64,000 nt of DNA, taken from contig NW_026864809.1 of the NCBI RefSeq assembly GCF_026571515.1, positions 124,001 to 188,000 on the forward strand, given 5' to 3'. A model generated the notes under the pieces. That model saw nothing but the letters and a program-made list of their open reading frames with translations. It made no database searches and was not told where the DNA came from. This document shows positions 17,126-41,509 of this stretch, piece after piece (within the stretch, counting starts at the first letter, position 1; every line of letters begins with the position of its first letter). The position numbers were made by a program, and so were the translations under genes. The stretch is from Ruditapes philippinarum. Taxonomy: Eukaryota.

Positions 17126-20100
17126 TAATGTCCATAGAAATCCTGTCAAAATCTACATAGAGAAAGGTTATTTTTTGTGTATTTATATAAATGTTCTAAT
17201 TTTGTCTTTGCATTGGACGTAAGTAAGGAAATATATCAGTGCTGTGCATTTTAGTAAATCAAATGTCCGACTATTGCGTAACAATTGTAACGATTGTGTT
17301 ATGTTAAGAAAAATACGAAAGATATTACAATTTATTATCTTTTTATTTATTTTTTATTTGTTTAAAGTATCTATTACGTTCTGTACACCACCAACGGCAA
17401 CATAAGAACATAGTGGAAACCTAGAAATAAAAGAAACAACTCTAGTTATTTCCAAAAGATTTATTGGTATTGTCTGAAGATTATCTAATCTAATCTAATC
17501 TAATCTAATAATTGACAATTTATAGTGGACTTTTCTTCCATTTCAAACTCATGAATTATTAAAGCCTTCGTAATGTTTCCATGTTGTTGTTCTTTCTTCT
17601 TTTTTTTATTCCTAATTATTTATTGAAAATGGCAATATCTACATGTTTATATTTTATCTTATTTTGAAATAAGTGCCTATAACTGTGCAAATTACTGACA
17701 AGCTTGTATTTCGAAACTTATTTATAAATTCGAAAATCTTTGTCAAATTAGTTTTGACCTTGAAATAATCTCTACAATTACAATTTGTGACATGCTTTTT
17801 TTCAAAACTAACTTAAATTCAGAGAGTAATGCGTTACTGAGGCAATTTAGAAGAAATTCATTATTGTTTAATATGATTGTTTTGTAAATTATGACGGTGG
17901 AACTCTAAGGCATTTAAATGACAATTATTAACGATTGAATTTTCTGACTGAATATTTAACAATTTAGATACTTTGACAATATAATATTCTATTAAACATG
18001 AGAGTTAAAGCTAAAAAGACATTTTTCGAAGGTGTATTACGTTATCCGTTTAAATAGAAAAGAAACATCTAAGAAACATGACTTAAAGCCGCTGATGATG
18101 ATTATGGAAGGGATTATCCGCCAGTTCACTTATTATGCTTTATGACATTCTAATTTCCGTTTTTGCTTTTGCGATAGTGAATGTGATGTTAGATTTTGGT
18201 TAGTGTATTTCGTATCATTCTAATTATAAAGGTATTTTGAAATATATCTTTGTTATACGTTAATTTTATTTTTATACACGTTTTTCTTGTTTCATTCTGA
18301 AAATTGGTATGATTTCCCTTAAAATATATTTAATACATTTTAATTCAAAATCACACATTAAAATCAACATTAGGTATTCAGTGTATGGACGCTACCGAAT
18401 ATGTGTTAATTCATTTGTAATAAAATGTTCAACATTTAATCAAAACAATCGAAACATCATTCGCAGTATAAAATGCTGTTTAACATTGACTCATTAAAAC
18501 AAAATCGTCTTCATAACAATGTTGACGTTATCAAAAAACGAAGCGGGGAACCAATTTTTGTAGTGCGTTTTCTTACGACAGAGGTCGCTGTTTAATACTA
18601 ACTGATCCCTTTCGGTGCGGACGTAAAATTCACATCATGGAAATGATCCGATCAAACATCGTGATACCTTGCCTTGAAAAAAGCTGTTACTAGCTCTATA
18701 TACAACAACAACGAACATGTTCTCTCTTGCATAATGCGCAACATATCATTTTTATTCTTTAAATCAACTCATTTTTGAAGATCTTTCAGAAAAGGTATGC
18801 ATCTGGCATACTGTATGCGGCGGATTTTGAGATATTTTGCCTCAAACTTGGCTTTTTTACTATACGTTATATATAGGGGGGATTTTTTGGAGTCATTAAC
18901 CTCCACATGATCGGATTAGTTTTCGTAGTAACAGATTTGTGAACACCGGTCAGGGAGCGGTTATTATTTTTTACATTTTACCAGTTATTCCCCGCTGATT
19001 AAAAGGGCCAAATTCAAGCGCAAAAAACTAATTAATTTTGAATTATACTTCGAAACTCTTAGTGTGCTATGCAAACTGCTGTTTCGAATACATAATACAC
19101 AATGTCAGCATGGGACTTAAATTAGTAAGATTTTTGTAAAATAAATACAGAAACACTGTAAGAATAAAATGTGTGTCAAATTAATTTTAGAAAGCAAATT
19201 CAAATAACGGAAAAATATTTGAAAGCTAGCAAATTAAATATCTAATTATAGTTTGCATGTTTACAGCCTTAGAATTGAAGTGTAAATTAAATGTTCGCAT
19301 ATTTCAATAAGAACTCGAGTTACGTCAGCAAGTACAACATCTTAATATTGTATAATGATTACAACGTATTGATAATAATGTCTTCGATTTAATAAAAATG
19401 TTTTCATAATAATAATAATAATGTCTTCCTATCAATAAGAATGTCTTCAAAATAATAAGAATGTCTTCATATTAATTACAATGTATTCATATTAATTAAA
19501 GTGGCGGTTAATCCCGTCCAAAGATGATGAGTAAAACATTGTTTAATTCTTTTTGGACAAAAGGTTATTTCACAAAATCTTGATAATTTGCCAAATTAAA
19601 TTGACCGAGGTTCAAAGGCATAAAAAACAGAAAAGTTTAATTTCTCACAATTTCACATGGGGTACAAAAAATGATATGCAAAGGATATTTAAGAAATGAA
19701 ACTAAAATATAGTCTGGAATGTCTTGTGTTTTCTTAGTTCAATTACAGTTAAAAGCGATGTAATTTTGGGTATTTTTCCCAATAAGAATAATTATTTGGA
19801 AAAACGAAATGAGCGAAAGATTTGAAATTTATTGGTCTAGATCTACATAAAAAAAGATAAATCTCGGAAAATTATATCCATTTTTGTCATGTCAAAAAAA
19901 ACATCGGTGGAGAACGAAAACAGCTTACATTCCTTTTTATCATTTCGGTGTTCGTACATACTTTGAAAGTTACTTTAGACCAATACATTTAAGGAATTTC
20001 AACAAAGAAAAAGAAATATACTTCAAAAGTGATGCTCATTTCAATACGTGTATTGATTGATTATCAAACAATGAACATTCCTTTCTAGAGGCAGAAGTGT

Positions 20101-20482
20101 ATGCCATATTATCAAACTCTTCCATTCATTTGCTGATTTCACACATACATAGCACGTGTAAACTCATCACTACTATATAGGATAGTTGTACTTCGCCTCA
20201 GTGATATGTTTTAACTGTCTCTTATTATGTAAACGGCTTATCAAAGCCATTATCATACACAATTTCTTACATACAAAAGCGGTTGTTTACTTTCACCTTT
20301 ACCCTACTGGCGTCAACTCATTCTACCTATGCGATCAAGACCAAGGTCTACACTGTTCTCTAAACAGCCAGTAATTTATCTTGAACTTTTACCTCAAATG
20401 ATGAATGGTTTTGTCCACATTGAATTATGACCAAGTTTATTTCAGGGATTTATTTTTTCAGGGGTTAAATAAACCTACTTAC

Positions 20483-20623
20483 CCCGTTAGATGTCTTGTT
20501 AAGGTGCATTGCTCTTTGTCTTATGTTGAACATGTAACAATCCGCGCATGGATGACCCACTTCATTTTTGTATGCTAGAATATTTTCTATGAGCATAATT
20601 AAAAACAATAAAATACTATGCAT
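20483..20623 (-). CDS. Exon of unknown secreted protein, paralog 1: MHSILLFLIMLIENILA-YKNEVGHPCADCYMFNIRQRAMHLNKTSNG
   Basis: Hydrophobic N-terminus; donor GGG|gtaagt. 24 of 30 mature residues match the 37.2-kb paralog, and 12 of those codons differ synonymously. Confidence 0.8.
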
Positions 20624-23600
20624 ATTGGCAGTCAGTTTAATTATCGTAAATCTTGAAGTTTTGTTTATAGTCACACTTTATGCATTAATTCAAGTCATCC
20701 AAATTCAATTATTCTATTTTTGTACAAAACATAGTTTACGTTTAATAACATTATAGAAATAACACATCATCCTTAACTTGTTTACTATTACTTACAAAAC
20801 AAATCAAACGTAACTACTTGTACTCATATCTTTTGTTGTTGTATTCTTTTCACTTAATCCTTATAAAATCACAATTTCAAACAGCAAAGCAGCATAGCAT
20901 CGATCACATTTAAATTGAATTACATTGCATTATGTGAACTGACACATTACATGTGAATCGTCACACAAACTGAACTTCTTCTTTTGCATGTATAATCCCT
21001 CCTAAGTAGAGTCTTAGCAAGCAAAGCGTGCTTTATTGTCCTATCTTGGAAACATTTGACAGTCTCTGTTCATATGAATAGAGACCATTTCTCCAATGTA
21101 TCTGTTAAGCATAATTCTAGATAAATATATATGTGAGTATTGTTATTCGATATTTGTATCTGGTCCAAATCACGCAACATGATATTGTCTCATTGCGGAA
21201 CAAATAATGACTGCTCAATATGATATACAGCTTCCTCGGGCAATTGATAGCCCTTATAATAATATATAAAACTACAACATACACTTTGTAGACAACTATA
21301 TCAATTGGGAAACGCATTCAGTTCATGATGAATATACAAGAAAAAATGTATCCCCATAGAACAAATTTGTAGTATAAGGGAAAACAACTTTTGTTTTGAC
21401 ACATAATGATTATTATAAGACTTTGATTTAGATAACAAAACAAGCGTATGAGATAACAAAACAAGCGTATGGCCTAAATTGAATAAAAATAAAATCTCAA
21501 GGTTAGAAAGTCTTAACACTGATCAGCATTAGTTAATTTTTAACCATAATCACGCCAAAAGATTCTTGTTTGATCATATACAAATCGAGATAAAACCATG
21601 TAAACTATTTGCTTCAAATGGGGAATTGTGGGCAAACCTTCTCAAAAACAAGTTTTTGTCAATTTTCTGTGTAAACAAAACAAAAAATACATGATAGCGA
21701 TTGTATAACCACATCGTGTACAAACGAAGATAAATAAAGAAAGATACAAAGCAACACCAACAGTATTCCATTTAGAATTATGCACTTATTTTTAAATGTA
21801 TCTTCCCATTATATGAATTATGATACTACAGGTTTTATATGTTATTTAGATTGTGTCATAAATAAGTTATTACAAACAACTTTGAACATTTCGCTAGACA
21901 AAGTGGCGCTTTAACAATTTCTGCCAATTAATGAGATACAACAAAGACGGCATCCAGTTAATTTAATTATTCACCATGAACTCAATACAATGTATGCTAT
22001 ACAATGAGGCAATACATTCTATAGGGGCTTCATTATTGAAATGCTTTGAAGATTGAAGATATATTTTTAATTAAGAAATGAACTTAAAGAAATGACACAG
22101 ACGTGTCACTTTGAATATTTCATGATTAACACCGTATGAGCATATCTGCGAATCTTTCTCAATTCAAAATTACGACATTTCTATGTTTAAATGTTTGATT
22201 CTGCTGAGGCAGGTGCGAAGTGGCATGGATGGTAGCTTGAATTTTTTCATTGCCGCCAATAACTGTGCTCAAGCAAACCAAGTCTTGAATATTTTGACTT
22301 TTTTCATTGCATAAGTTCTTTAGGGATTCCATTTCTTTCTAACCCTTAGTCGATATATTTCAGTTCTATTTAGTGTTTTAAAAATTGCATTAGTATTTCA
22401 TATTTATTTAAATTGTATAGATAGCAAGATCACTTTCGTTTGCATGAAATGATCTAAAAACATCGGGTTGTATGCAAGGTTAAAGAGTTAAAAATAATTA
22501 CTTGCATATTTGAATATTTGCAAACATTTTCTAAATATAAATAAACGATTCATTATTACCAAGATATATTTAAACCTTAGTAACAAAGTACAAAACGACA
22601 ATAAATAGACTTAATGTTAAATGTGCTCTGTGTTAAACTTCCTTCTCATTAATACCGTTTTCCTTTCGATTTGTGATCTAGAAGTTATTCAACTTAACTG
22701 ACGCGCAATTTAATGCTTCTATTATCATAGCTGTATCTGTAACTTCTTTGTTTCTTGTAAATAAGCGATGCATGGCTAGTTTAGCATAGCTTAATTTATT
22801 TCGGGAAATAATTTATCAACGTGGACACATCAAGAAACATAGAAAAACAGACATAACATGAATATGTATAAATATATAGATTATTGCTAAATATATCAAT
22901 GATTACACGAAGGAAATGGGTTTTATTTTTGCTTTTCTCTATAGAAAGTTAAATCCACGATTTTAATAATATAATATCTTATTCAGTACATTAAGTTCAT
23001 TTTCAGTAACAAAAGTTCATGTACTGGAGTTTAAAGTTAGACTTTCAAATCACCAGTTGATAGGCAGTCTTTATTGCCTCAGATCCCTCTCAAAATTGTA
23101 TTTTATTTTACCCAACGTTTTGTTATTTAGGACACATTTGTTACTTTTCTAATGGCATACAATTTAAAAATAGCTGAACGATCGTGTTATAAAAATATAA
23201 AAAAACTGCAAAAATCCTTTTAAGGTAATTCTATGTAAATTGTTTTTAATGTTTTGTTGTATAAAAGCGCAGTTCAAATTAATGTTAAATACATTCTAGC
23301 CGAACAACAAATATTTTTACGAGACTGTACATGCTGTATGTTCCCCTTCATAATTTCAGCGACATTTCTGAAGTATAAAGTTCTTTGCAAAGGGTTTATA
23401 CGGGCACATCGTCTGAAATATTCCTCAAACTTTTCCTAATAAGTATTATTAAGCTCAATATCATTTCTTACTGGGCAACTAGCCTTGTCGTACGATGAAT
23501 CTACGAATACACTGGCTATTTGTCGGTAATAAAATATTATATCATAAACGAAAACACCAATTACAGCTGTTTTTTTGGTATTGATATTCGTTTTCAGTTT

Positions 23601-24261
23601 AAGTCAAATGTAATAATTATCTGAAAAGTAGTCTTTATGTCAAAGTGAATAAAAACATAACCTTTTCAAGCCGATACATCGTACATGACAAAACAAGAAC
23701 AATGCCTTGAAGCGTAATTGGGTTTATGCAAAAGATTTATTGGTATTGTAGGAAGACTTATCAAATTAGTGTCTACAAAAGATGTTGAGTAGAAAACGCT
23801 ACTAGACATTCCTCTAAAAGAATTTGTAAACCTTGTTATATGGTTATTTATAGTGTATGTTTATTCTCCCTGTACATTTCATCATTCGTTTTTAAACCTT
23901 GTTAGTATGTTTCAATACCATGGCTTAGGAATATTTGTACATTAAATCTGTGTTTGATTAAATGCATGGCCCTCGATGAACCCCATTGATAATTTCCATG
24001 TAACTAACTGCCTTCTACATACATTTATATGGAATCCTTACGATGTTTCCATTACTTAAGCAACTTTGGCGATCTGGTTTCATTCACCAAAAACATTGTG
24101 AAAAATGCATGTTATGCAGTAAATTAATGTTTCAGTCATATTTCTGGCTGTTTGGACAGTGTTTATACCCAAAGAAACCCTTGTTCTTCTAACGTCCTAT
24201 TTTGAATTACCTTTTCAACAAACACTTTTCAGTACTGATTTCTACGAAAGACCGGTAGGGT

Positions 24262-24755
24262 CATTTCAACTTCATTTATTCCTGACTTTATCTTCAAGAA
24301 TTCACATTTTTAACTTCGTGAATTCACGTTTTCAACATACGGAATTCACGAATTCACGATTTCAGCTTCATGAATTCACGGTTTCAACTTCAGGAATTCA
24401 CGATTTCAACTTCATGAATTCACGATTTCAACTTCATGAATTCACGATTTCAACTTCACGCATTCAACTTCGTGAATTCACGATTTCAACTTCACGAATT
24501 CAAGATTTCAACTTCACGAATTCACGATTTCAACTTCATGAATTCACGATTTCAACTTCATGAATTCACGATTTTAACTTCACGAATTCACGATTTCAAC
24601 TTCATGAATTCAACTTCGTGAAAAATTTACGGTTTCAACTTCACGAATTCATGATTTCATCGTCATGAATTCACGATTTCAACTTCATGATTTTTGCGAT
24701 TTCAACTTCACGAATTCACGGTTTCAACTTGACGAATAAACGATGTCAACTTCAA
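24262..24755 (+). repeat. Subterminal 22-bp tandem repeat (TTCAACTTCAYGAATTCACGAT) of the left arm
   Basis: Directly visible array of about 20 imperfect units. Confidence 0.95.
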
Positions 24756-25129
24756 CGTATATGCCACGTGGCCGTGACGTCATTTGTCGCCATATTGAAT
24801 TGGTAATGAAATTGCGTGAAAAAATGGTTAGTGCTCGTTTACTTATTTACTATTGAAATATATCATTATTTTCATTTCAAATCCTTTTAAGTATTTGTAG
24901 GAAAATTAATCATATAAGTTTGTTTATAAAGAACATATATCATGGTGATCTAGAACACATAAATCCGGCTTTTCTTGAATAAGACCCTGGGTCTCAACCA
25001 AATCTTTATATTTTAAAATATTGTTTAAAATACACATAAGGGTTCAATCTATATGCATCTGTTTGTCAGAATTGGATTTTTCGTGTACAATATATAATAT
25101 TTTAAGTAATTGTATTGTTTCATCTAATT

Positions 25130-25940
25130 GCAGATGCTGGTGTTATCATTCATCATTATTTCTATGGCATTTTCTTGCATTTGCAACAGGAGAATCGATG
25201 ATGGATTTGATAGTTCAGTATTTTTCGGTGGGATATAAATACTAAATACAAAAGATATTAGCTATTCTTCTGTTGATTCATGGAATGAAAGTTAGTTATT
25301 GTCACTTAAAAATCATAAAGAGACTAAATTTACATAAGCGGACAGTAGAATCGAAAAATAAAGATATTTTTCGTGCAATTCTTCGAGAATTATCTGGGAG
25401 TGGTAAATGTTTTGGTTATAAAGAAATGTGGAAAAGACTTAAACTTAAATATGGCCTGAATGCACATCGTTCAACAGTGATAAGATTCATGTGGATAGCA
25501 GATCAAAATGGCAAGGAAAGAAGAAAAAGCAAGCGGCTTCTTCGGACGAAGTATTCGTGTCCGGGTTCAAATTTCGTTTGGCACATCGATGGATACGATA
25601 AACAAAAACCTTTTGGGTTTGCAATTCATGGGGCCGGATACAGTCGTAAAATTCGGATGCTTAAAGTTGGAACCAGTAATAATGACCCGCAGTATATTGC
25701 AAAATACTACTTGAACACCATAACCAGCTTAGGAGATTAGAATATTCGGACGGCCATGCAGCGAACTGAAGTTTTATCGTTGGAAAAAGCACGTCTAATT
25801 AACGGATCGAATCATTGTGGAGTATGCTTCGACGTCAATGCGTAGACTTCTTTACAAATGGGTTCAAAGATATGAGAGATACAGACTTAAACAATGATGA
25901 AAATATTTTTCAAAGACAGTGTTTGCTTTATTGTATTCAA
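25130..25940 (+). pseudogene. Degenerate IS3EU/integrase-core DDE transposase (left arm)
   Basis: ORF 25273-25740 contains YSCPGSNFVWHIDGYDKQKPFGFAIHG..GYSRKI..L..SNNDP; downstream LRRQC..F...FKDMRD remnant; stops and deletions present. Confidence 0.85.
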
Positions 25941-25989
25941 GTAATTTCAACTGACGGGGTTGCCTTCCAGAGTTCATGAATTTATTACC

Positions 25990-26680
25990 TAGTGTTTTAA
26001 GGTACACACATTAGTGTCATTTACCATGCATCGAAGGATTTTAAAATTACTAGGCATTAATGTCTACCATATCAAGACGACATGTCGCGCCTAAGACCCA
26101 TGTCCCTACCTTCAAGGTCAAAGCCACACTTATAGTCTAATAGTTTGAAGGTACTCATTTTTCTCGAGAAGAGTTTGCAGATAAACATTCAAGTCTGACT
26201 GTAACTTTGTCATGCATGGGGGATTTTAAAATAACTTGGCACAAATGTCTACCACATCAAGACAATGTGTTACTACTAAGACTCATGTCCGTTTGTGCGT
26301 CTCGTCCCCACTTTCACAACAATCATGTTCAGACGGTAACTTTTTCAAGTTTTGAGGGATTTTGACATAACTTGGGCACAAATGTCTATCACATAACAAC
26401 GTTGTGACGCGTCCAAAAACCAGGTCCCTTCTTCAAAGGTCAAGGTCACACTTATATTTTTAAGGTATGCGCTATCACAATTAGTGATTATAGGCTCACA
26501 CATTCGTATCCGAACAATAAGTTTGTCATGCATTGAAGAGTTTAAAAAAAACTTGACACAAATGTCTACCACATCAAGCTGACGTGTTGTGTGGTATGTT
26601 CCTACCTTCAAGGTCAAAGTCTAATAGTTTGAAGGTACTTTTGCTCATTAGAAGATGTTGAAGGTACACATTAGTTTCGA
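25990..26680 (+). mobile_element. HINE-like element with about 180-bp internal subrepeats
   Basis: Repeated catgcat..gattttaaaataacttggcacaaatgtctaccacatcaag...ttcaaggtcaa units. Confidence 0.65.
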
Positions 26681-28069
26681 AAACTTTATATTTCTCTTAA
26701 TTATACAAATGGTTCAATTTAATTAGTCATGATGAAAACATGCCAGTTAAATATTCCTCTTAATTCAAATGGAATTCATAAATTTGCAAGCCATACTTTT
26801 TAAAGAATGTATGTTTAGTCATCAGAATATGATTTTTCTAATTGATATTTTTTCATATGATTTAATATTTACTGTGATTTTACTGTTATTGTACGAATAA
26901 TGATTGATAAGAACGCGTTGTTACGCGTGACCTACGTGCATGTGGTAAATCAAATTGAAACTGTAAAAGTGTTACTTATAGAGTAGGTCATTTGAATGGT
27001 AAATAAAAGCTTTATTTGTGTTTACTTTTGTCTTTTTTCAAATTGTGATTTTTGAATCTACAGCCGATTGCCAAAACATTTTTAATTTCTTTTTTATTTC
27101 TTTTAGAACACTCTATTTGACTATTCTTTATAATAGTTGTTGCAGCTGCCTGATCTAGTATAATATCGGATCGCTGCTTACAAAAATATCAATCATAGAA
27201 ATATGTTTATTAACCTCGTGGAAACTGCCTTTTTTTTCTCCCATGCATATTTTATAACTGTTGATGTTTTAGACCCGTTTTGGGCGAGAGAGTTGCTTTA
27301 ACGGTCAGTTCATTCCTTCAGGATTTTTCACAATTTCTTCAATTACGTAATGGATACAGTAAGAGTTTTTCTTCGCAACTGTCTTCTTACAAACGTTAGA
27401 CAGTTTGCTAGGATAAACAACAAATTGTTCGAAGCTAAGTCGTTGATAAATTGTTTCTCTTAGCAAACCGCCTTCTTCATGTCTGTAAAAGACACGTTTG
27501 AAGAAAAGGAACCGACTTAAACGACGACTAAGTGTAAAGAACAGATAAATTAATAAATACATTACCTATATTTTAATCGGACAAAATAGACTTTCAGTCA
27601 TTTACAATGTTAAATGGATGCATTCAAAAGAGAGTCATATTTACTAAAATTCATTATGTCGATCAATATGTATTGCGTCAATCTTATTTTGATAAATGTT
27701 GCGGACCTCTTAGTTGTTAAATTTTCTTATTTACATTCTTAACACAATGGCCGTTGACGTTTTATATCTATTTTTCAGTGGTGGGGTGGGAGGACGACAG
27801 TAAATGTCATATCATTGTTGTTTATCCTGATAGAATAACATACGGTATACAAGTGTCAGCATTATCCAACGAACAATTGTTTCGTCGATAGTCAATAGTA
27901 ACTTTGTTCCATGAAATGGCCATCAATTTTTTTTATTTTATTCTATTTTCGATAAACTAAAACTACTGGATTACGCTATCAAGCTCGCTACAAAGTTCAA
28001 TTTGTTTTATGGTGTCCTCATTGAGGCAGTTATTATATCGCCTGTCAAGTTTTAAGATTGACTTTATCT

Positions 28070-28355
28070 CTTGTAATTGGTCGACCAGAAGACTAGGTAG
28101 CGCTTTTGTACTCACTCAGGCGTAGGTGTAGACGTCACATTTTGGTTTGCGTGCAAGTTGGTATCTCAAAAACTACTAAGAGGAAGGATTGAAACGTATT
28201 TGGAAGCATAATGTGCTATATCCAAGACGCGTTACTCTAATATGGATTTTGAAAGAACTATGGCCCTATTTGACCTTAGAAAATTCCACATTATCCAGAC
28301 ACTTGTTTTCCTATCAAGCACTAAGAATAGTCGAGTGCAATGCCCTTGTTAATAG
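28070..28355 (+). mobile_element. Short HINE-like element
   Basis: gcttttgtactcactcaggcgtaggtgt start; agaactatggccctatttgac and aatagtcgag end motifs. Confidence 0.5.
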
Positions 28356-29007
28356 ATAAGTAGCTATATAATACATTCTCTTTAAAAAAATTATTGTAGT
28401 CAAACAAGAAACATGCGAGAATTAATGTTTATCATCGCGAATGTTTTTACATTTTGACTCTCATAGTTTAGCATGCAACAAATTTAACTTTGAATGGCGC
28501 CAAAACTTTCATTTGATAATGCAAAAATCTCGCTATTTTTAATAAAATACAGAAGGGCGAGACAAGACCTCCAGAGAAAAAAATCTTGCATTTCAATAGA
28601 TGTCATATAACTGGCACGAAACAGGACACCGTATAATGCAGCTGCACTAAATCTACATGGAAGGTAACTGTTATTTACAGACGTTAGAAGAATTTTTGAA
28701 TAGTTCTGCTGAGGGTATAGTCGTATTTTAATCTATAGTTAAACAAAATGTCACCTTGCTGGATGTAGATAAACAATATAAACAATTTTCGTGAAATGTA
28801 CTTTAATTTGAACAAATTCTGAAAATAAAAACAAACATAACAAGTTAAGGAACTAAAGAAGAAATACGGCTTAATGGTATAATCGCTCAACATCTGTCAT
28901 TTATTTCAATGCATGGTGATGAATAAATTAAGATTGTATAATCAAGTGTTAAAATCTATATAAGTACAGGTTACCATGACCAAAATGACCGATCAAAAGT
29001 AAGACAA

Positions 29008-29970
29008 AACTAGAAATGTGTCTATAGGACACAGATGCCCCCATTCATCCAATGCTTCTAGATGCAATTATATGCCTAGACATTACATTTCTCAAGTGCT
29101 GAATTTGTTTCCATGTATCTCTCTTTTATTTTGTTATAAAAATGACAAACCCAATGATAAATGAACACTTCAATAGTTCAGTTGTACAGGCATGAGCTAA
29201 AAGGGAGGATAGAAACAAAATGAACCAATAGAGAAAGGTAAAAGTTAATCAAAGACGCAAGTGTGTAAAAAGGAATTATTAGATAAAATAATGATTTCAG
29301 AAAATATAACTTGTAATAACAGAGTGAAGGTAAAAATAGAAATACAAAATGGTTGATAAAAATCTGATGTATTACCTAGGCGCACATGCTCATCAACATT
29401 CCTGTAAAGTTTTTTGACTAGCTCCAGGGCTTTTTGAGTTAATATAACTTGTAATAACAGAGTGAAGGTAAAAATAGAAATACAGAATGGTTGATAAAAA
29501 ATCTTATGTATAACCAAGGCGCACATGCTCATCAACATTCCTGTAACGTTTTTTTACTAGCTCCAGGGCTTTTTGAGTTACATGCGGCACAATTATAAAA
29601 TTGAAAACATTTGACATAATTCAAGGACCATAACTCTAACAATTTAATATAAATCTACACGTGAAAGCTCAGGTGCTTAGCCTAACATGCTGATCAACAT
29701 ATATGTGAAGTTTTTTACTCTAGCTCCAGCAGTTTTAAAGATAAAGGCGACACAAGTTGAAAATTGCAAATTTTGACTAAGTGAGGGGCCATTACTCTAA
29801 CAATTCCAAATTAATCCACATTTGAAACCCCGGGTGCATCAACATTCCTGTAAAGTTTCTTGACTCTATCTTCAGTACTTCAGATACAGGCGACACAACA
29901 TTTTTGGACGGACGGGTAGACAGCTGGACGAACAAGTGCAAATATAAATGCCCAACTCTGAGAGGCATAA
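29008..29970 (-). mobile_element. HINE-like element with a tandem internal duplication of about 137 bp (29305-29580)
   Basis: aactagaaatgtgtctataggacacagatgccccc hairpin end; (GGAC)n-like tract and atgccc...ggcataa at the other end. Confidence 0.7.
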
Positions 29971-31273
29971 TTATACGATCAACAAGGTATATGTACAATG
30001 TTTGGTTTACATCAACATTAAATAAAATCTTTGAACAAAATTGAAAAACAAAATCATTTATTACAGGGGGGGAGGGGGGAAACAATTGAAAAAAGTTAAA
30101 CACAGCAATGTTATGGTTCTTGGTTACTGCAATTCCTCTGAGTGATCTTTACATCTTTTTTCAGTTAAATTAAATTATTTCCCCTTTGTCTCGGAATATG
30201 AGTGACAGATGAATGGACAAGGTGACCAGTATGTACACTCTATCTCAATAAGGAGTATAATATACATGTCATAATTTTGTAAGTAGTCAATAATTGTTAA
30301 AAGATAAGTATCTTGTACCACAGAATGCACTTTTGTACATGTGTCTATAAAAAAGTTTAATTTCTTTCGTATTAAATCATTCATGTGACATAATTAATAT
30401 AAATCATATTCAAAAGTTCCACTGAAGGTGATTCAATCTCTATCACTCCACTTTCAAATATTTGAAAATGGAGTTTTCTGATGTGAAAATTGATCTAAAC
30501 CTATATTTTATTTTGTTTCATCAGTGAACCAATAATAATTACAATTAATTGCCTTGATAAAAGAAGAGTATAATAATATGCCAAACATGATTTTGGTAAA
30601 AACAAAAGGGCATATAACTAAGAAAATAATAATCTTCTGACGCCAAATTGAATGAAAAGACCAAATAGATTTAAACTTCCTATGAGAGTTATAAAACACA
30701 GTGCATTGTTACATCGCATTGATATTTCAAGTTCATGTTAATTTATCTACCGGTTCCTGAGACGGAATGATATTGGATAGGACATACAATAATAAACTTG
30801 TAGCAAGTCATATCAATTTTTTGAGAAAAAAGATGACTGAACCTGAAAAAAAGTCATTTATGAAGCAGGGTCATTGTAAGTCAACTTGAAAGTATATCCT
30901 CAAAGAATGTTGTGTCCATGTATATAGACAAATTCATTTATAGATAACTTAGCTATAGCCACTTAGGTACATTTTTGGTGATATTTTCTAACCTATAAAA
31001 TTCATATAATTAACTAACTAACTAACTAAAACTGTCAAAGTTATGAAACTTTACACGCATACGCACACACGCATGCACACGCGCACACACACAGATGCAT
31101 TGTAATTTTATATTGAAATGCCATTTTTGTCCAGGTTTTATAATTTCCATATACTAATTGCAAAGTATAATCACAGCAAAAAAGTGAGAATGTCAAGTCA
31201 AAGTTAAGTTTGATCTTCATAAATGTTTTGCCCTAAAAGATGTTGAGTCTAAATATGAAGACAGTCCATTTAT

Positions 31274-31835
31274 AAACTAGAGCTGCCACAGGTGTGACGA
31301 ATACCCCACATAATCTCTTTGATACAGCCTATTTGGTAGTATAATTTATAAATATTTTTAAATGAAAACATTTACTTCAAAGGTGACCTTAATTTTGCAC
31401 AGAAATGGAATGGGTTCTGCACATTACCTTATTAATGCAAACATTAAAATCAAGTTAAAAAATTCTTCAGAATAAAAGTATTTCTACATAAATTGTCTGA
31501 TAATTGAACTTTGCCTTTACATTGAGCCTGCAAGGTCGTGACATAGGTTCTACCCATTGCAATGCATAGGTATGATCCAAATTTTATGGAAACCTATGAA
31601 GGGGTAAAAAACTTTCAGAGCAAACACAAAATCGGATGACATTTGACCTTTGACCTTTAAGGGTGACCTTGACCCAAAGTCAGCACAAAGTGGTATGAGT
31701 TTTATATAACACCTTATCAATTTGTCAAGGTTGAAGAAAATTTTCGAATTGTAAAAGAAGTACTGAAGAGCATTAAACTTGTTTGATCTCAAATTGTTAA
31801 CTTGACTTTGAACCAGCAGAGTGGTGACATGAGTT
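31274..31835 (-). mobile_element. HINE-like fragment
   Basis: aaactagagctgccacaggtgtgacgaataccccc end; tgacctttgacct / tgaccttgaccc motifs. Confidence 0.6.
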
Positions 31836-31849
31836 CTCTCCGCTGCATG

Positions 31850-32490
31850 GCCGTCGACATGTCCTTATCTGAAAAATATTTGTAGTTTGCGTACAGTGAC
31901 ATTTTCAGTTCCTCGATCACTCATTATTGTTGGAACGATCCCGCCTAAGCTGGTTATGGTGTCCAAGTAGCATGCATTTTGCAATAATCTGTGGATCATT
32001 ATTACTGGTTGCAACTTCAAGACACAGAGTTTTACGGCTGTATCTTTCTACGGCCCCATGAATTGCAAACCCAAAAGGTTTTTATCGTATCCATCGATGT
32101 GCCATACGCGGCTTGGACCCGGACACGAATACTTCCTCTGCAGACGTCGCTTACGTTTTCTTCTTTCCATGTCATCTTGATGTGCTATCCGCATGAATCT
32201 TACAACCGTTGAACGATATACATTTACCACTCCCAGATAGTTCTGCAAGAATTGCACGAAAAAATATCTTCATTATTCGATTCTACTGTTCGACTATGAA
32301 ACACTAGTTTCTTTACGATTACTTTTAAGTGACGATAACTAACTTTTATTCCATCAATCAACAGAAGACTAGCTAATATCTCCCACCGAGAAATAATGAA
32401 CTATCAAATTCATCATCGTTTCTTTATTTACAATACGTTCTCCTATTGCCAATGCAGTCAACGCCATAGAAATAACACCAGCATCTGCAA
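31850..32490 (-). pseudogene. Degenerate IS3EU transposase (right arm, inverted)
   Basis: RSTVVRFMRIAHQDDMERRKRKRRLQRKYSCPGPSRVWHIDGYDK; homologous to the left arm, with frameshifts and an internal deletion. Confidence 0.85.
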
Positions 32491-32857
32491 TCAGATAACA
32501 ATACAATTACCTACTATATTATATTTTGTACACGCAAATGCAATTCTGACAAACAGATGCGCAGATTGAACCCTGATGAATATTTTAAAGAGTATCTAAA
32601 AAAACAACATTTGGTTTAGACCCCGGTTTCCAATTCAGAATATAGGCAGATTTATGTGTTCTAGATCCCAAAGTATTTTCATTTTAAACCAACTAATATG
32701 AATAATTTTCCTACTAATACTTTTAACCTATTTATAATGAAAATAATGATATATTTTAAACTTATATAAGTAAAAGATCACTAACCATTTTGTTCACGCA
32801 ACTTCTAAGCTATCCAATATGGCGACAAATGACGTCACGATCACGTGGCATATACCT

Positions 32858-33403
32858 TGAAGTTGAAATCTGGAAGCTGAAATCGTGAATTCGTGAAGTT
32901 GAAATCGTGAATTCATGAAGTTGAAATCGTGAATTCATGAAGTTGAAATCGTGAATTCGTGAAGTTGAAATCGTGAATTCATGAAGTTAAAATCGTGAAT
33001 TCATGAAGTTGAAATCGTGAATTCACGAAGTTGAATTCGTGAAGTTGAAATCGTGAATTCATGAAGTTGAAATCGTGAATTCGTGAAGTTGAAATCGTGA
33101 ATTCATGAAGTTGAAATCGTGAATTCGTGAAGTTGAAATCGTGAATTCATGAAGTTGAAATCGTGAATTCACGAAGTTGAATTCGTGAAGTTGAAATCGT
33201 GAATTCATGAAGTTGAAATCGTGAATTCGTGAAGTTGAAATCGTGAATTCATGAAGTTGAAATCGTGAATTCGTGAAGTTGAAATCGTGAATTCATGAAG
33301 CTGAAATCGTGAATTCATGAATTCCGTATGTTGAAAATGTGAATTCACGAAGTTAAATATGTGTATTCATGAAGATGAAATCGGGAATTCATGAAGTCGA
33401 AAT
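32858..33403 (-). repeat. Same 22-bp tandem repeat, inverted (right arm)
   Basis: (GAAGTTGAAATCGTGAATTCRT)n, more homogeneous than the left array. Confidence 0.95.
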
Positions 33404-33441
33404 GGCCCTACCGGTCTTTCGTAGATTTCTCATGTAACTGT

Positions 33442-33654
33442 TCACTTCCAAAAACATGACGTAAAACGTGTTTCATCGTAATTTAGTGTACTCGTCGCAT
33501 CAGTTGTCTTGTTGGTATGTACCGATCTATGCCAGATATTGAACATATAACAGTCTAGGCATGGATGACCAACTTCATTCATAGATGCTACAATAACCTC
33601 CATAAGCACATTCACAAGCACAATTAAGCCACCTGTGTTTAATATTATATTCAT
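33442..33654 (-). pseudogene. Paralog 2 of the same exon with the donor lost, reading through to a stop (70 aa); pseudogene or truncated peptide
   Basis: MNIILNTGGLIVLVNVLMEVIVA-SMNEVGHPCLDCYMFNIWHRSVHTNKTTDA. The position equivalent to GGG|gtaagt reads GCG|acgagt. The large IS3EU-type insertion lies just downstream. Confidence 0.65.
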
Positions 33655-35459
33655 ATTTGCATTTTACATACTAGTAGTTTGTTTCTTTATAATGCTAAAG
33701 TCAGTTCCTTGCAGTCAAATGAACAACCTCTTTTCACTATTTCTTATTACTTGTATTTAATTTTGTAATATTTTTCCCCGTTTATATTGCAAATAACCTG
33801 TTATATACGGCCATATAACCTGAGAAAAAGTGAGATTTCTTCATTAATTGACAGCAGCCATGTATATAAAACTTTATGAAAGTCATGATATTATACAATG
33901 AAAAACAAAGTTACAATTGTACAGTATTATAATAAGAAAATAATTTACGGAGCGGCGTATGAACAAACATAGCTGTTAAAGACGTTTAATATTCTTATTA
34001 GCGTCCAACTACTTTATTCGTTGACCTAATTTTCAGGTCATGTTTACGACATTTTAGTAAATGAAATAAATTGATATATTGCGAACAATATATGCAAAAT
34101 AGACTGACAAAATATCCAAATTTAGACATTCTTATTGGATTAAAGAGTAAGGCAAAGACTTACTGAGGTCGGTATTCATCTGATTTACCTGGAATTTAAT
34201 TATTCAGTTCCTTAGATTATTATTTCTACTTATAAGTTCGTCTTATGTTGTAGAACATTAACTGCAACATTTGTCTTATCGAACAAGTGTTTTATTAAGG
34301 AAACAGCTGATTCAAAAGAGAGAAAATACACGTACCAATACAGTTAGACAAAAAATGTGATAATTTATTCATTTTCAATTGTGTAATTGTTATATCAATG
34401 TAACTTGGGTTCAAATGATGATAACATATAAAACAAATATATTTGTCGTTACTTTTAATTAGACAATAGTTACTGTTATATTTCTTGAATACAAGATTGC
34501 AACAAATTTATGAACTTTTAATAAATTGATTCCAATTAAGCATAATTATATTATAACATTTAGTGTTTAAAGGCTCTTAAATCAGTTTTGGAATATTTCA
34601 CCCGTCTTAATGCATGTTTTCTTTTTATGTAATAACGTAAAGGTGTAAATAAAAAAGCAAACAACAATTATATGTAGAAAGGGTGATGAATAAGTTAAGT
34701 TTTAGGAAACTGTACTTAAACTCTTGCAATATCATGTGTTTTATTCCTAAAATCAATGGAACATACGACGGACATTATCCAATTTAATGAATTATTTACG
34801 AACACTGAAAAGGTCTTCCCTGCAATGATACGATACTATATACATTTACAATATATCTATCTTATATATATGCAAGCGAATTCGCAACATAAGTATATCT
34901 TTGACACCATTTTTAAACAACATTCACATGATTTCCCTTCTGGGAATATTGTTGTTTTTGAATTGATATAAGATTTTCATCGATCTTCCGTTGAGTGTTA
35001 CGCAACATGAAGTCATATTATTTTGTTCACAAGCGTCAATTAAGTTTATTAAACCGGAAATAATTGTGATTTAGACCGAAAAGACTCAGTGTCTAAAACA
35101 ATTAAAATTGTAAAAATGACTCTTTTTTGGGGGGGGGAGGTGCTCGTATTTATAATAAAATAAACTTGTCCGCAATTAGTTATCACCATAGGCGTTTTGT
35201 GGTGATTTGTTGTATATAGTGTTTTGATAACCTGGTAAACAAGAACGTTTAATAGTTACGGAATATAATGCATCATGGTATATGTTTTGACACAATAAAA
35301 CCAATCTGAATGTATGAAAACGAAATCAATAAACTTTCTGGCACCTTTGAAGAAATTGCACTTTATTATTCAGTACAAACAATATACGAGTACAAGTAAT
35401 GGTATACATAGGGTTTCAATATATTGTAAAATCATCAAGACAATTAATTAGACTCTTAA

Positions 35460-36060
35460 CCCATTACGCGATATACACGCCTTTTAACGCCTTATTTCAC
35501 CCCCCCCCCACCCTTTTAGTGTCTCTAATGGTGAAAAAATGCCTTATTTAGGCCCCCAATCCTTGTTTTTGTTTGAGAAATGTTGTTTCGGCGCGGTCCC
35601 CCAACCAAAAGATACATCAGGGGTTGCTAGGGGATGTGCCCCCTTCTGTTTGGTGGGTTTGAAGGGGGCGGAGTCCCCCTCATCGCCATGAAAATTTTGG
35701 ACTTGTGAGAGGCTATAAACGACCCCAGATTGGTCATAAGGTAACGTGTAACCAACGCTGAAAAGCATTTAACTCTATCCCAATCCATTGAGAAGTTGTA
35801 GCACTTTGAAATCAATTTTGATGGAAAAAATCAACGCAAAATAATGATTTTTGGCAATTTTAAGATGTCCCCTCGTTCCCATGGTAACAGAAAATTTAAG
35901 CCTGAACATGTTGTTTCAAGGGCAATGGTCCAGTCAACATTTGTGCCAAGTTTGATTAGTGTTGAAGCAGTTTTTATAGTATTATAGCATTTTGAACTTG
36001 TAACGGGAGACTTTTCAATGAAAACATCCATTTTTCACAAAATGCTCATGAAGTAATGGG
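35460..36060 (-). mobile_element. piggyBac-type non-autonomous element
   Basis: TTAA|CCCATTAC...GTAATGGG|TTAA; homologous in opposite orientation to 60741-61362. Confidence 0.85.
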
Positions 36061-37139
36061 TTAATGAATATTGACACAGTAACGTTACATACGTTGTCTG
36101 TTCTACGCGTGTGAACATCAAATAGTTTTGTATTATGCATCATCATGACATTGTAACGAACAAGAATAATTCAAACTTGAGAAATGCATATTTATAAGTC
36201 TGGTAAATGTATACCTGAAGCGTGCTCGCATCTATCTATCTTAACTCTGTTTTAAACTAACTAACATAAAACAGACTTACTTCGCTATGTTCTGAAAATG
36301 TTGTAATTATCCTTCATTTTTGTATCATATTAAAAAAATAATGATAGTTTACGGTTGCGTCATACAAACGTTAAATGCATTACATTTGTGAAAGTGTCAA
36401 AAGAATAATAATCAACTTTAAATAATATGAATCATAATATCGGTTAGGATTTTGATCAGTTTTGTTACCTGCGAAAATTATCAAATATTTAGAAAAAGTA
36501 CTTTATATCACATTTACATTCGATAAACGTAATATCTAAGTAATGCATAACAAAATATCAAATTTTTAACAATTCAGTGTTAAACTATATTGATTTCTTT
36601 GTAAGTTGTATAAGATAAGTATTAAATAACCTTGAAACTACCGAATGTGTAATAAAACACTTAGATAGGCGACTTACAACATATTTTTAGATGAAATTGG
36701 CATTTGACGGAGCCGCAACAGATACGATCCGAGAAGTGTTTAATAAAATACGTGTAAACATTGTTAAGGATATATCAAATGGTTGTTATTCTCTTTGATG
36801 AAAGCAATATACCCATCTTAATTCATACCAGGGAGTGCCGACACTAGCTTCATTATAGAAAAGCGCTATTCATAACTTCTTCTTGAGTATTAAAATTAAT
36901 AATGATATGTGTTGAAACTGGGATATGATAATTTATTGCATATTTAACGTTTATTTTGGTATTTCCTTTTCATTTTTATACTTTGATATCCAAGTAACTA
37001 CTATTGCTCTCTTCAAAGACGAAAAGATGTTAACATTATCTGTATTCATATATTTAAAAATGCATTACACTTGGCATCATTTGAATGATACACCCTGAAG
37101 AAAATATAACAATTTCATATCATAATAGCGTTCACCTAC

Positions 37140-37289
37140 CCCGTCCGACGTCTTGTTTATATGCAAGGACCTCTGTCTAATATTATACATATAGCAATCC
37201 GCACATGGATGACCAACTTCGTTCCTGTATGCTAGAATAATTTCCATAAACTCAATGGTGAAGAAAAATGCAATCAATATTTTATCCAT
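37140..37289 (-). CDS. Paralog 3 exon: MDKILIAFFFTIEFMEIILA-YRNEVGHPCADCYMYNIRQRSLHINKTSDG
   Basis: Same motif; donor GGG|gtaggt at the equivalent position; upstream in-frame ATGs at 37310 and 37307. Confidence 0.8.
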
Positions 37290-40200
37290 CTTTTGTTTGT
37301 GTGCCATCATATTTAAAACGTTTTTTTTTTCTTCTGATTTTTGTTTAATTGAAAGAAGTCAATATTAATGGATCTTATGTTAGATCATCAATCGCAACTT
37401 AAATACAGAACACATGATTCATGTTATAGTACTTTAAAACACTATGTTACAGTAATTAAGTGTCATCAAATCGTGTTTCATTGATTACTTTCCAACATAA
37501 CTTCAAACTGTAATTTAAAAGTATGTCACAGTTTTAACCATTTAGTAGCCGCAACAATAATGCTTTGCTTTTCATGTGTCATCCAAACTAAATAATAGGT
37601 TACTTTCTTCAACGATATCTAATAGAATCTGCAATACATGTAACTAATTTTAATTCAGAGCATATATAGAGAAAACGTGTTTCTTTATACATAATCCTTA
37701 CTAAGTATAACCTTAACTAGCTTTGAGTGATCATTTAGATTCAATGACCTTTTTTGTTCAACAATCGAAAATTTCTATTCATTTAGAGCCCATTTCTCTG
37801 GTATCATTGAATCAGATAGTTTCAAGTTCTTACTTCCTTACTATAGCAAGGATTGCTATTCGATATTTGTATCTGGTCCAAATCACACATTACTAGATTG
37901 CTCTGATTCTGTGTACAAGCTTCTACCACTCTAGTTATACATGCCGCTTTATTTGTTAGAATATTATACAACTTATAGGAGTTTCACTATAATTGTTATC
38001 AGATGTTTAGAAATTATAAATTGTTTTTCCCCCAAGTTTTTGGAATGTTTGACAGTGGTTCAAACAATGTCTTAGCTTTGTAATAATCAACAAATAATAA
38101 TTGTGTTTTTTATAGAAATCAAAGATATATGTGTTTGAACTTAAATATTTTAACTATATGTTTGAAAAAAAAACAACATTAATTAATACAATATTAATAG
38201 TTACACCAAGAATATGGCAATAACAAGGACGCCTTATTGCTGGATATAGAGGTGTTTCTTGATATCCCAGTATCAAAAATAGTGCATATATTATTATCCT
38301 CATATATTATGTACATAGCAGCTTGACTTGTAAAATTATATATGTTGTGTTTTTTTCGTGCAAAATAAGTTAACATAAACAATCATTAGTTCGTAAAAGT
38401 TCACAAAAAATATAGACTTTTATTGCCTTATGCTTTAATACATTTAAAGTCAGTCTTTGTTAGCATAGACACTGTTTCCTAAAAGGTATTTGTTTAGGGT
38501 ATAATCAGATTAATTTTTATTGCATTTTCTTTTTATTTATAACATAATTTTTTACTTATTCACTTATTTATTTATTTATGTATTTTATTTTCTATTTTTT
38601 TATAAATCTCCAATTTTAATATTTTACCATGTCAAAAACATGAATCATAGTTATGCAACAATTTTTACATTACGTCATTGTGTAATAAATAAATATAATT
38701 CCAAACATGTGAATACAAATGTCAATAATAAGCACATATACATAGTATGTTGATTCGCATTACCAAAGTTTACCGACTTTTTTAAATATTTGATTTATAC
38801 TCACAACAGCAGATGTCAAGTGTTGTGTTGATGCTGTAAAAGGATGCCCAGGACTTCACTTCAGTGTTGTTATGTTTTTTTATGCTATGGTCCTTCGGTA
38901 TCATTTATTCCAATACTTAATTGTGTTGTAGATTGCATACTTCCCAAGCCGTTGCTATGGGTGGTGACGTGGGTGATGTTGCTGTTTTTGTTTCTGTCGT
39001 GAACAGACTCAATCAAACTGAGTCTGTATTGTTTCCCTATAAAACTTTGCTTCAGAGGAATTCACGTATTCTAGACTTATATTTTTTTAATTCAATATAA
39101 TATATAAAAACGAGAAGGTTGTAGGTTTAAGTTCAAATATTGTTTTATATACAGACGTGCCAAAATACATATCGATATCAGATGATCTATAATGTACTTG
39201 TATATGATGTACCTACTTGATTCTGATTAAATGAATTATTTACAGAGACCACATTATCATTAACTTTCACGCAATGCTCCCTTGACGTGTCAAATACACG
39301 TATATTGAAATAGTAACTAATCAAAACCATGCAACCTTTAGATTAAGTCTGATTTAATTTGAATAAGATATTATTTCGTAGAAAAGATTGAATAAGAAAT
39401 AGTTATGTACATTGAAAAAAGTATGTCTTTAAGAATTTCTCTTACATCACTACTAACTCAGATAAACACTTTATACATTTAATTCATATCACTGGACGGG
39501 ATAGATAATTAATGAACCCTTTTAGGCTGCTAACACTCATTTAAATTATTCAGGGTGCCACAATAAAACTGTTATGCTTTTGGAACAGATTCCCATGCTG
39601 ATTCACCTTTGTTTTAACTTTCTTTTTAAGAAAATATAGTGTTTACTCTAGTTGAATATTTCTATTTGGCGTCCGCGCCGAAGCGCGACGCCCTTTAAGG
39701 AATGAGAAAGGGCAATTGCAACTTCTCGGGCCTTTTCGTCTTTTTTAATAGCCGACCATTAGGAAAAACAGCGAACTGGAGAATGCAAACAATTAATTGC
39801 ACTCTATATAAATCTATAGAAAAAAATTTTAAAAAGGCCATTTTTTACGAATTTTTATGTCATAGTATTATCATTTTGAAATTGTAGGTCTCTCCGATTT
39901 TGATTGCAATTATGACATTTTTACCGTATATATTTAAATAGACATAGTTCATAATTTTAAATGTCGCTTTTATTTTGACGTTGTGTGACATTTAACAGGT
40001 CTGACAGTAGTATACTATTAAACCTATTCGCTGTTCAAGTCTCTTGTTGTTTGAAGGCAATCGATTTTATGGTAGTTTGAGTGGAATGTTCATTTGCCGA
40101 ATATTGTGACATTTTAACAACAGAAACGTTCGTACACTTTTAACATGAGTTGTTATGGGTTAATTGATAGGAATGTAAACACATTGGTGGGTCAGACGAG

Positions 40201-40714
40201 GTTTTGAAATACCACATGAACTTGAAATTCTATCAAATAACCAATATTAATGATAATATCCAAAAAACCCTCTATATAATATAAATAAATTTATACCATA
40301 TAGATCTAGTGGCATATATTTCGGATATTATAGACCTGTATATTTTGAATATTATCGTTAATATTGATAGAACTTCCAGTTCCTGTGGAAAAAACATTCA
40401 ATATTCTAATCTCTAGCATGCCTACCAAAGTTCATGATGAACAATGTCTTTTGTCTGCCCATTCATAAATGATATACAATTCCGGTAAAAACCAATTAAC
40501 CATTGAAAAGTTTATAAGAATATCTGGTCATCAGATGTCTACTCGTTCATCACCACTTGCTGCATTTCTTGCTTGGACGCCAATTTGATGCTTTGCATCA
40601 ATGCTTTTCTTGTTCTGAATACTTTGAGTAGACTATCATAGTCATTTTATGTTAAAATATATGTGTGCGCTAGTTCATTATATTTTATCACTATAGTACA
40701 TTAAAAGTAGTATA

Positions 40715-40862
40715 TATATTATATTATATAATATAATATCATATTAGTATTTATATTATATAAGTATTTATATTATATTACATTAGTATTTATATTATAC
40801 TATATTACATTAGTATTCATATTATATTATATTACATTATCATTTCATATCATATTATATTA
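40715..40862. repeat. Low-complexity (TATTA)-like tract
   Basis: Directly visible. Confidence 0.85.
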
Positions 40863-41509
40863 AAATGTTTTATATAATTTTGTATATCTTAGGCAGTTTT
40901 TATATTCTTTATCCTGAACATTTTCATCAATGATCGGTCATTCGCCACTATGATAGTCATTCTTTTCACATACTTTGTAAATACAAGTCAACTTGACAGC
41001 GAACAGGATATGCATAACTTCACTTTAAGCATATGTTACAAATTTTGTGACGGGTGTTATTATGATATCTTCATTGTAAGCAATTTATCAGTTTGGGTAT
41101 ATATTTGTATACCCATATTTATATAAATATATTGACTAAGAAATTTACACATTTTTCTGAACAAACCTTACAAAAAGAAAACACTTTTTCCAAGAATGCC
41201 TTGAAAGTTTCGATTTATTGTGATTCTTAAGTACAGGGAATTATGAGTCGGTACCATAAAATAGACAATTTCCATGGCTTTAACTTCCTTTTTATAAAGA
41301 CATTTTGATATCGGACTAGAATACAAAAATAATGAAGACGAAACTCCGTCATGGGAAGGTGGTATGCTTGTTTTCCAATCCATATATACTCGTATTGTGA
41401 TCTAAAATGATATGTTTATTAAATATGATAAAACTAAATTAATACAAATCATAGTTTTTTATGTCTTTGTTTCCTATATATCTCATCATTTAATACATCA
41501 TGAATAATA

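Follow-up and report, generated by a model that had tools for sequence, protein, structure and literature searches.

A candidate array of alternative first exons for a CCN-family gene in the clam Ruditapes philippinarum

The UGT1A locus and the clustered protocadherins (alpha and gamma) are vertebrate variable-first-exon arrays, in which tandem paralogous first exons, apparently with upstream regions of their own, precede distant shared constant exons. The CCN proteins (CTGF, CYR61 and NOV) play a central part in regulating the extracellular matrix. Vertebrate CCN genes (CCN1/CYR61, CCN2/CTGF and CCN3/NOV) have five exons, the first of which encodes the signal peptide; to our knowledge, each has a single first exon of this kind. 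Here we describe three paralogous exons in a 64,000-nucleotide stretch of the Ruditapes philippinarum genome (assembly GCF_026571515.1, contig NW_026864809.1, positions 124,001 to 188,000), referred to below as the window. The contig is called C13296, and the window is C13296:124001-188000. The exons, named C1, C2 and C3 and assigned to types 1, 2 and 3 in the same order, encode a signal peptide followed by a module of about 30 residues. They are probably promoter-linked alternative first exons of a Ruditapes CCN-family gene with IGFBP, VWC, TSP1 and cystine-knot domains.

The clam locus resembles UGT1A and the protocadherins in its tandem paralogous first exons, their apparently separate upstream regions and the remote constant exons, and it resembles the vertebrate CCN genes in having one module per exon and a signal peptide in exon 1. 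In UGT1A and the protocadherins the variable exon encodes a whole binding domain or ectodomain, whereas in the clam it encodes a signal peptide with or without the 30-residue module. Unlike the vertebrate arrays, that of the clam is broken over two scaffolds. In place of the one first exon of vertebrate CCN genes it would comprise about twenty, eight of which belong to the EVGHPC class found in the window and at least twelve of which are short and encode a signal peptide only. A full-text literature search found no publication on a clam CCN first-exon array, and the isoforms are known from automatic annotation only.

The RNA junction of C1 and its probable partner gene

The sequence-only reading of the window had described three paralogous exons that share the core NEVGHPCxDCYM(F/Y)NI..R..H.NKT, and our analysis confirmed all three on the minus strand (Table 1). 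Eleven sequencing runs that were guessed to be RNA contain part of 20300-20800. Contigs of the runs X1, X2 and X3 and raw polyA reads of the run X24, 19% of which was read, were aligned to 15300-21299. Record 8 of run X1, 743 letters long with a word depth of 28, lies on 20483-20682 with one differing letter. It departs from the genome exactly at 20483, the predicted donor, and continues with 536 letters that are absent from 15300-21299. Since the contig breaks exactly at the predicted donor, C1 is transcribed in at least run X1 and its donor is used. The first 30 of the onward letters read in phase 0 as I-C-Q-Y-P-C-Q-C-P-V, the start of an IGFBP-domain exon. The earlier reading had asked whether the donors at 20482 and 37139 join the same acceptor; for C1, the donor at 20482 enters this IGFBP-type exon. 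Run X2 covers 20486-20673 at a depth of 2.2 and run X3 covers 20645-20809 at a depth of 2.8. No joint was found within 15300-21299, which includes 5.2 kb downstream of C1. Over the donor, the TAG that precedes the conserved core, the signal peptide and 59 nucleotides (nt) of leader 5' of the ATG, the X1 contig follows the genome without a break, and no joint lies further upstream. The suggestion that the conserved parts might be cassette exons of 92 nt, with the TAG as acceptor, is thus not borne out.

A 33-nt segment of C1 intron 1 (20396-20428) attracted summed word depths of 2760 in X1, 986 in X2 and 4450 in X3. The matches end loosely on either side and carry C>G at 20418, and this variant form is that of C6205:65706-65738. 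A highly expressed RNA from that place, and not the C1 intron, is thus the source of the reads.

The 30 letters beyond the C1 junction are absent from the window at up to three mismatches and, as exact matches, from 21 further loci. They have one place in the whole genome, C6934:104908-104937, with three mismatches, all of which are synonymous third positions. C6934:104908 is the start of an exon behind a ..ttgcag acceptor in phase 0. This exon encodes an IGFBP domain (PF00219, 39.7 bits, E 7.8e-10) and is followed on the same strand of C6934 by VWC, TSP1 and cystine-knot exons. The 1.4-Gb assembly contains one copy of this gene body, with one place each for the IGFBP and cystine-knot exons, and tblastn and blastn gave no counterpart of it on C13296:1-188000.

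The cystine-knot frame matches XP_060599610.1, 'CCN family member 2-like isoform X1 [Ruditapes philippinarum]', with 99% identity. The 90% cluster of this protein contains the RefSeq isoforms X1-X8, which are identical save for a first exon of 25-31 residues. Therefore, the CCN gene is already a variable-first-exon gene. The eight annotated first exons were mapped exactly to C6934, and a small hidden Markov model (HMM) built from them, whose eight matches to the annotated exons hold by construction, added four to five unannotated candidates (Table 1). In the 'CCN family member 2-like' protein P0006, IGFBP (34.3 bits, cut-off 28) and TSP1_CCN (52.8 bits, cut-off 27) exceed their cut-offs and VWC (27.5 bits, cut-off 27.6) and Cys_knot (23.2 bits, cut-off 24) fall just below them; IGFBP, VWC, TSP1 and cystine knot stand in the order of the CCN family behind a signal peptide. 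Short first exons of the CCN type were not found on C13296:1-188000 (best E 0.044). C6934 shares no synteny with the three duplicated units A, B and C of C13296, only repeats. Exon 1, the IGFBP exon and the cystine-knot frame were searched separately, the full-length work was carried out with natural database proteins, and the searches for the junction used the IGFBP region of P0006 and the N-terminus of P0031, the Mya protein described next, against cluster representatives, behind which isoforms are hidden, and gave no protein that carries it.

An equivalent exon type with an equivalent joint is present in Mya arenaria, a clam of a different bivalve order, whose CCN cluster contains 11 first-exon isoforms. 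The Mya 'CCN family member 1-like isoform X1' (XP_052789353.1, P0031, 407 amino acids) starts with MMHVIFCVLLLPVVWHMTDGGLGRVTEVGHPCAECYLFNIRQRRLGHPANQTDAK and continues with VCRYPCTCP.. of the IGFBP domain, so that a signal peptide is followed by TEVGHPCAECYLFNIRQRRLGHPANQTDAK and the IGFBP domain. As in Ruditapes, the motif ..EVGHPCxxCY(M/L)FNIRQR..N-x-T.. is joined in frame to IGFBP; the differences are that the Mya annotation is automatic and includes one such exon, compared with eight Ruditapes copies. The CCN isoforms of Mercenaria (five) and of Dreissena (several) all belong to the short signal-peptide kind. A profile of the exon gave four matches among 1.84 billion cluster representatives, one of them a spurious repeat protein. 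The other three are 57-84 residues long, and two of these continue past the GT at the exon end, like intron read-through. The Mya protein is missing among the profile matches because isoforms are hidden behind cluster representatives. A full-length CCN protein of Mactra antiquata (KAL4219426.1, P0010; IGFBP, TSP1_CCN and VWC) is named 'Tigger transposable element-derived protein 4', which looks like a naming error.

Scaffold linkage, proposed mechanism and competing explanations

The exon class and the CCN gene body lie on scaffolds whose starts dovetail. C6934:2-1489 corresponds to C13296:3773-2295 on the opposite strand (97.4% over 1492 nt), and C6934:3718-4498 matches C13296:879-1 (76% over 887 nt). 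In this orientation, the CCN array, on the plus strand, follows downstream of the C13296 exons, on the minus strand. Elsewhere in the genome the 1.5-kb end piece occurs only as partial copies, 72-84% alike, within the C6934 array, which marks it as part of the array and not as a dispersed repeat. The first exon of isoform X4 is 2.1 kb from the start of C6934; the array on this scaffold is therefore cut off by the scaffold end. Tandem paralogous first exons have one orientation on each scaffold, with eight on the minus strand of C13296 and eight plus the four to five candidates on the plus strand of C6934. The eight of C13296 are all the copies of the exon that a six-frame search of the whole 1.4-Gb assembly detected. 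If the scaffolds are simply joined, with no missing sequence assumed, the constant exons are about 165-266 kb downstream of the class. None of the eight annotated Ruditapes CCN isoforms uses the EVGHPC exon class, probably because the reference assembly splits the gene over two scaffolds.

The sequence-only reading had compared the exons to UGT1A and the protocadherins and had proposed that they are alternative first exons spliced to shared constant exons. This proposal gains support from the missing local second exon, the RNA junction of C1, the CCN array with its dovetailed scaffolds, and Mya isoform X1. The order along the locus would be the EVGHPC-class exons, at least twelve short signal-peptide first exons, and the constant exons on C6934. 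Transcription would start at one chosen first exon, the phase-0 donor of which would be spliced to the first acceptor that it meets, the phase-0 acceptor of the IGFBP exon. The intervening first exons would be skipped, as they probably have donors only. The product would be a CCN isoform with an extra module of about 30 residues at its mature N-terminus, containing a CxxC pair and an N-x-T sequon. The short class would alter little beyond the signal peptide and a few N-terminal residues, and its role is presumably regulatory, through many promoters. C3 and the copies of units A and B would be expected to behave like C1, and we take the C6934 gene body itself to be the probable partner.

Several observations weigh against this explanation. 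The junction is known for C1 only, from one assembled contig of one run that is only guessed to be RNA, and only 30 of its 536 onward letters were shown. Word depths on C1 are only 2-3 in X2 and X3, and the five reads of X24 all lie on the unrelated 33-nt match and none on the exon. Three of the 30 junction letters differ from the C6934 exon, compared with one of 200 in the exon-1 part of the contig; C1 may therefore in truth be joined to a very divergent allele or to a second CCN copy that is missing from the assembly. The protein collections, searched as cluster representatives, contain no Ruditapes protein with the C1-IGFBP junction, and the Mya protein is an automatic RefSeq model whose underlying evidence is not visible. 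The middle of the scaffold overlap, 1.3 kb on C13296 and 2.1 kb with the X4 first exon on C6934, is unalignable, one arm is only 76% alike, the assembly leaves the scaffolds unjoined, and no read or contig was seen to bridge them; instead of truly overlapping, their ends may be neighbouring array units or divergent haplotypes. The implied intron, at about 250 kb, would also be very long.

By the same mechanism, the exon class might instead belong to a second CCN paralogue, with or without an array of its own, located beyond the start of C13296 and missing or collapsed in the assembly, and not to the C6934 body. In favour of such a paralogue are the three synonymous differences in 30 junction letters against one in 200 of exon 1, the imperfect fit of the scaffold ends (97.4% in one arm, 76% in the other and no alignment between them) and the proneness of the region to segmental duplication. 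Against it stand the single place of both the IGFBP and the cystine-knot exon in the assembly, the confinement of the 1.5-kb end piece to two scaffold starts in dovetail orientation, and the truncation of the C6934 array 2.1 kb from the X4 exon. We regard a second paralogue as unlikely, while still the most serious competitor of the C6934 gene.

The exons could also be the starts of ordinary tandem genes, each encoding a small secreted peptide like NICOL with a nearby, fast-diverging second exon. A weak likeness to the stand-alone secreted NICOL, the database predictions of 57-84-residue proteins, and a 38-nt match with AATAAA downstream of C1 and C2 fit such genes. The exons nevertheless occupy sub-units of 3-4 kb, in three of which blastn (word size 7) and tblastx found no second exon. 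The claim of the earlier reading that there is no conserved downstream exon agrees with this result, since comparisons between the sub-units gave the exon and two short matches only. When units A, B and C were compared over the approximately 19 kb that follow C1, six blocks besides the exon were conserved three ways at 93% or more, none of which has an open, codon-patterned frame, and the listing of open reading frames in 1-20700 of the window contains nothing coding. A second exon within the unit was rejected, as the sub-units share no other conserved exon and the 19 kb carry no coding signature. Furthermore, no joint occurs in the 5.2 kb 3' of C1, and the one RNA contig that extends beyond the donor continues in an IGFBP-type exon. 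Among the short predictions, the tails are not alike in frame or length from copy to copy, and in two or more of the three the tail starts at a GT donor, as expected of intron read-through. Mya isoform X1 has the CCN junction. Tandem peptide genes are thus very improbable. A single repeat accounts for two of the six blocks, at 10910-11009 and, inverted, at 4870-5019, which are 93-100% conserved among the units; they have no coding pattern and look like the ends of a repeat or of an element resembling a miniature inverted-repeat transposable element (MITE).

That the junction contig is mis-assembled and the exons are untranscribed remnants or cassettes using the TAG acceptor, as the single contig, the chimerism possible in Logan contigs and the conserved TAG before the core motif might suggest, is the least credible explanation, given a break exactly at a consensus GT donor with the frame kept, colinearity across the TAG, purifying selection despite saturated synonymous sites, a conserved upstream element and an independent Mya model with the equivalent junction.

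With the exons read as first exons of the CCN gene, a gene for a matrix regulator would be driven from about twenty first exons over more than a quarter of a megabase, and eight of these exons would alter the mature protein. The arrangement in clams of two orders offers a tractable invertebrate 5' variable-exon array and a lead, open to testing, on an N-terminal CCN module that is new, and it poses the puzzle of why a dozen exons that encode signal peptides only are kept. We speculate, as a long shot, that the single CCN gene of heterodont bivalves is run from a protocadherin-like array of more than 260 kb with about 20 promoter-linked first exons of two classes, that one class attaches a NICOL-like CxxC docking module in cis to a secreted protein with a VWC domain, that the module shares its origin with the free-standing vertebrate co-ligand NICOL, and that exon choice sets plain or disulfide-docking CCN cell by cell.

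The N-terminal module and its likeness to NICOL

The encoded module is about 30 residues long. Its motif E-(V/I)-G-H-P-C-x-x-C-Y is invariant, and the copies of Ruditapes and Mya also have an N-x-T sequon. The sequence-only reading had assigned it to an unknown secreted family, which is replaced by an N-terminal module of a CCN-family protein; a module common to Ruditapes and Mya is supported by the two junctions. Among the other CCN sequences examined, none apart from Mya isoform X1 has the CxxC module with its glycosylation site. Cleavage of the signal peptide after ..ILA is a prediction made by eye.

The single Pfam match of C1 is PF15161 (NICOL), with a score of 17.2 bits (cut-off 27, E 0.0042), and seven of ten members of the exon family reach PF15161 at E of at most 1. 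The top PDB match of the profile is NICOL1 (9oz8_A, E 0.53), with which it aligns over 16 residues, PCaDCYmfNirqrslH against PCVDCHAFEFMQRALQ. The module and NICOL (C4orf48) are alike in a secreted N-terminal P-C-x-D-C followed by a ..F....QR.. stretch. NICOL differs in being a free-standing small protein with four cysteines; the clam module has two, corresponding to the CxxC half only, and is an exon of a CCN gene. Mouse NICOL is described in PMC12376267 as having four conserved cysteines (CxxC ... CxC). PMC13044245 reports that the cysteines at the helix ends of NICOL form intermolecular disulfides to the coiled coil of NEL. By analogy, the CxxC of the clam module may serve disulfide-linked docking or dimerisation. 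The module was not classed as NICOL because both matches are below threshold, the Pfam match lying under the gathering threshold, and because it has two cysteines in place of four; it is also spliced to a CCN body.

A derivation of the module from a duplicated IGFBP exon was considered as well and rejected on an hhalign probability of 1.9% over 10 columns; MAFFT had aligned the exon peptides on GCGCCYMC. An AlphaFold2 model of Mya isoform X1 with 18 CCN sequences was uninformative, with a mean predicted local distance difference test (pLDDT) score of 42 and values below 35 in the module, and an ESM Atlas look-up of the exon gave no usable match.

Exon copies, upstream element and coordinates

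Table 1. Features of the exon array in the window, on the window contig (C13296) and on the CCN scaffold (C6934); positions are those of the window unless a scaffold is named
Feature	Position or distance	Strand	Basis or remark
First exon C1 (type 1)	coding sequence 20483-20623, 47 codons; exon to at least 20682	-	translation, RNA contig
C1 product		-	signal peptide + module YKNEVGHPCADCYMFNIRQRAMHLNKTSNG; translation of coding sequence
C1 donor GTAAGT, phase 0	20477..20482	-	sequence; use seen as RNA contig end at 20483
Exon copy C2 (type 2)	33496..33654	-	frame intact, defunct-looking
First exon C3 (type 3)	37140..37289, 50 codons	-	signal peptide + YRNEVGHPCADCYMYNIRQRSLHINKTSDG
C3 donor GTAGGT, phase 0	37139-37134	-	sequence
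Upstream element of C1	21139..21176, ~35-38 nt	-	~515-550 nt 5' of ATG
Upstream element of C3	37852..37886	-	~565-600 nt 5' of ATG
9.2-kb insertion	24243..33424 (approx.)		adjoins C2 downstream; missing at matching place in unit A
Unit A	C13296:30150-83667		
Unit B	C13296:83654-125584		
Unit C	C13296:125629-172119 = window 1629..48119		third of three tandem units
Eight annotated first exons	C6934 2158, 15299, 44886, 57783, 69449, 73613, 90200, 99005	+	exact mapping
4-5 unannotated candidate first exons	C6934:10517-10732, 51007-51123, 63687-63806, 77068-77235, (84244-84336)	+	small HMM
C1 to IGFBP exon	~246-249 kb		simple join of scaffolds
C3 to IGFBP exon	~262-266 kb		simple join of scaffolds
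A1 to IGFBP exon	~165-169 kb		simple join of scaffolds

The full translation of C1 is MHSILLFLIMLIENILAYKNEVGHPCADCYMFNIRQRAMHLNKTSNG. The boundaries with the following intron are GGG/GTAAGT in C1 and GGG/GTAGGT in C3, both in phase 0 and at the equivalent position, as the earlier reading had noted. Its counts for C1 and C3 also hold: 24 of 30 mature residues are identical, and 12 codons differ only synonymously. The purifying selection that it deduced from them is shown by saturated synonymous sites (Sd 16.0 of S 16.7) together with a nonsynonymous distance (dN) of 0.087. For types 1 and 3 in general, synonymous sites are saturated and dN is 0.04-0.09, and between units the ratio of dN to the synonymous distance (dS) is 0.21-0.32. 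An alignment of seven exon copies has 21 invariant columns.

Self-comparison of C13296:24001-188000 by blastn resolved three tandem segmental duplicates of 42-47 kb that are 72-92% alike. The exons have the order of types 3-2-1 in each unit, with two to three first exons per unit, type 2 having been lost from unit B. Six copies look intact (A1, A3, B1, B3, C1 and C3). Between the older sub-units, blastn (word size 7) and tblastx found likeness in the exon (72-78% of nucleotides), far above chance, and in one short upstream element. The spacing of about 3.7 kb between copies that remains once the 9.2-kb insertion is removed agrees with the uninterrupted copy in unit A.

In C2 the conserved donor position has no GT, and the reading frame continues to a TGA at 33442; A2, the counterpart of C2, has an in-frame stop in the signal peptide. 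Both are probably dead copies. The type-2 exon and its flanks are 96.9% alike in units A and C (window 33424-33782 and C13296:67773-68131), and neighbouring segments are 80-92% alike. Inside the exon, the 90 nt compared contain one difference and no synonymous one. This high likeness suggests gene conversion or recent constraint.

The upstream element was detected as a match of 41 nt by blastn (word size 7) between sub-units. In each of the three units its sequences at the type-1 and type-3 copies are 97% identical, compared with 78% for the exons. It accompanies all six type-1 and type-3 copies and is partial at A2; it was not found at C2. No RNA depth was seen over the element of C1 in the runs aligned to 15300-21299. 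The element may be a candidate promoter or enhancer of the exon class that acts in promoter choice, and it resembles the protocadherin promoter element in layout only. Its distance from the ATG is some 500-600 nt, and 840-890 nt in B1, which has an insertion. The insert upstream of B1 (C13296 ~112000-112770) has a tRNA-like start (GGGCCTCCGTGGCCGAGTGGTTAAGG..) and is likely a short interspersed nuclear element (SINE).

The sequence-only reading had also listed non-coding similarity near 17400, 23690 and 36150. The first two places correspond to a 38-nt non-coding match, 89% alike and holding AATAAA, at 17453-17489 and 23729-23766 downstream of C1 and C2, while the third aligns unconvincingly. 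The 38-nt match may derive from an older 3' end or be due to chance.

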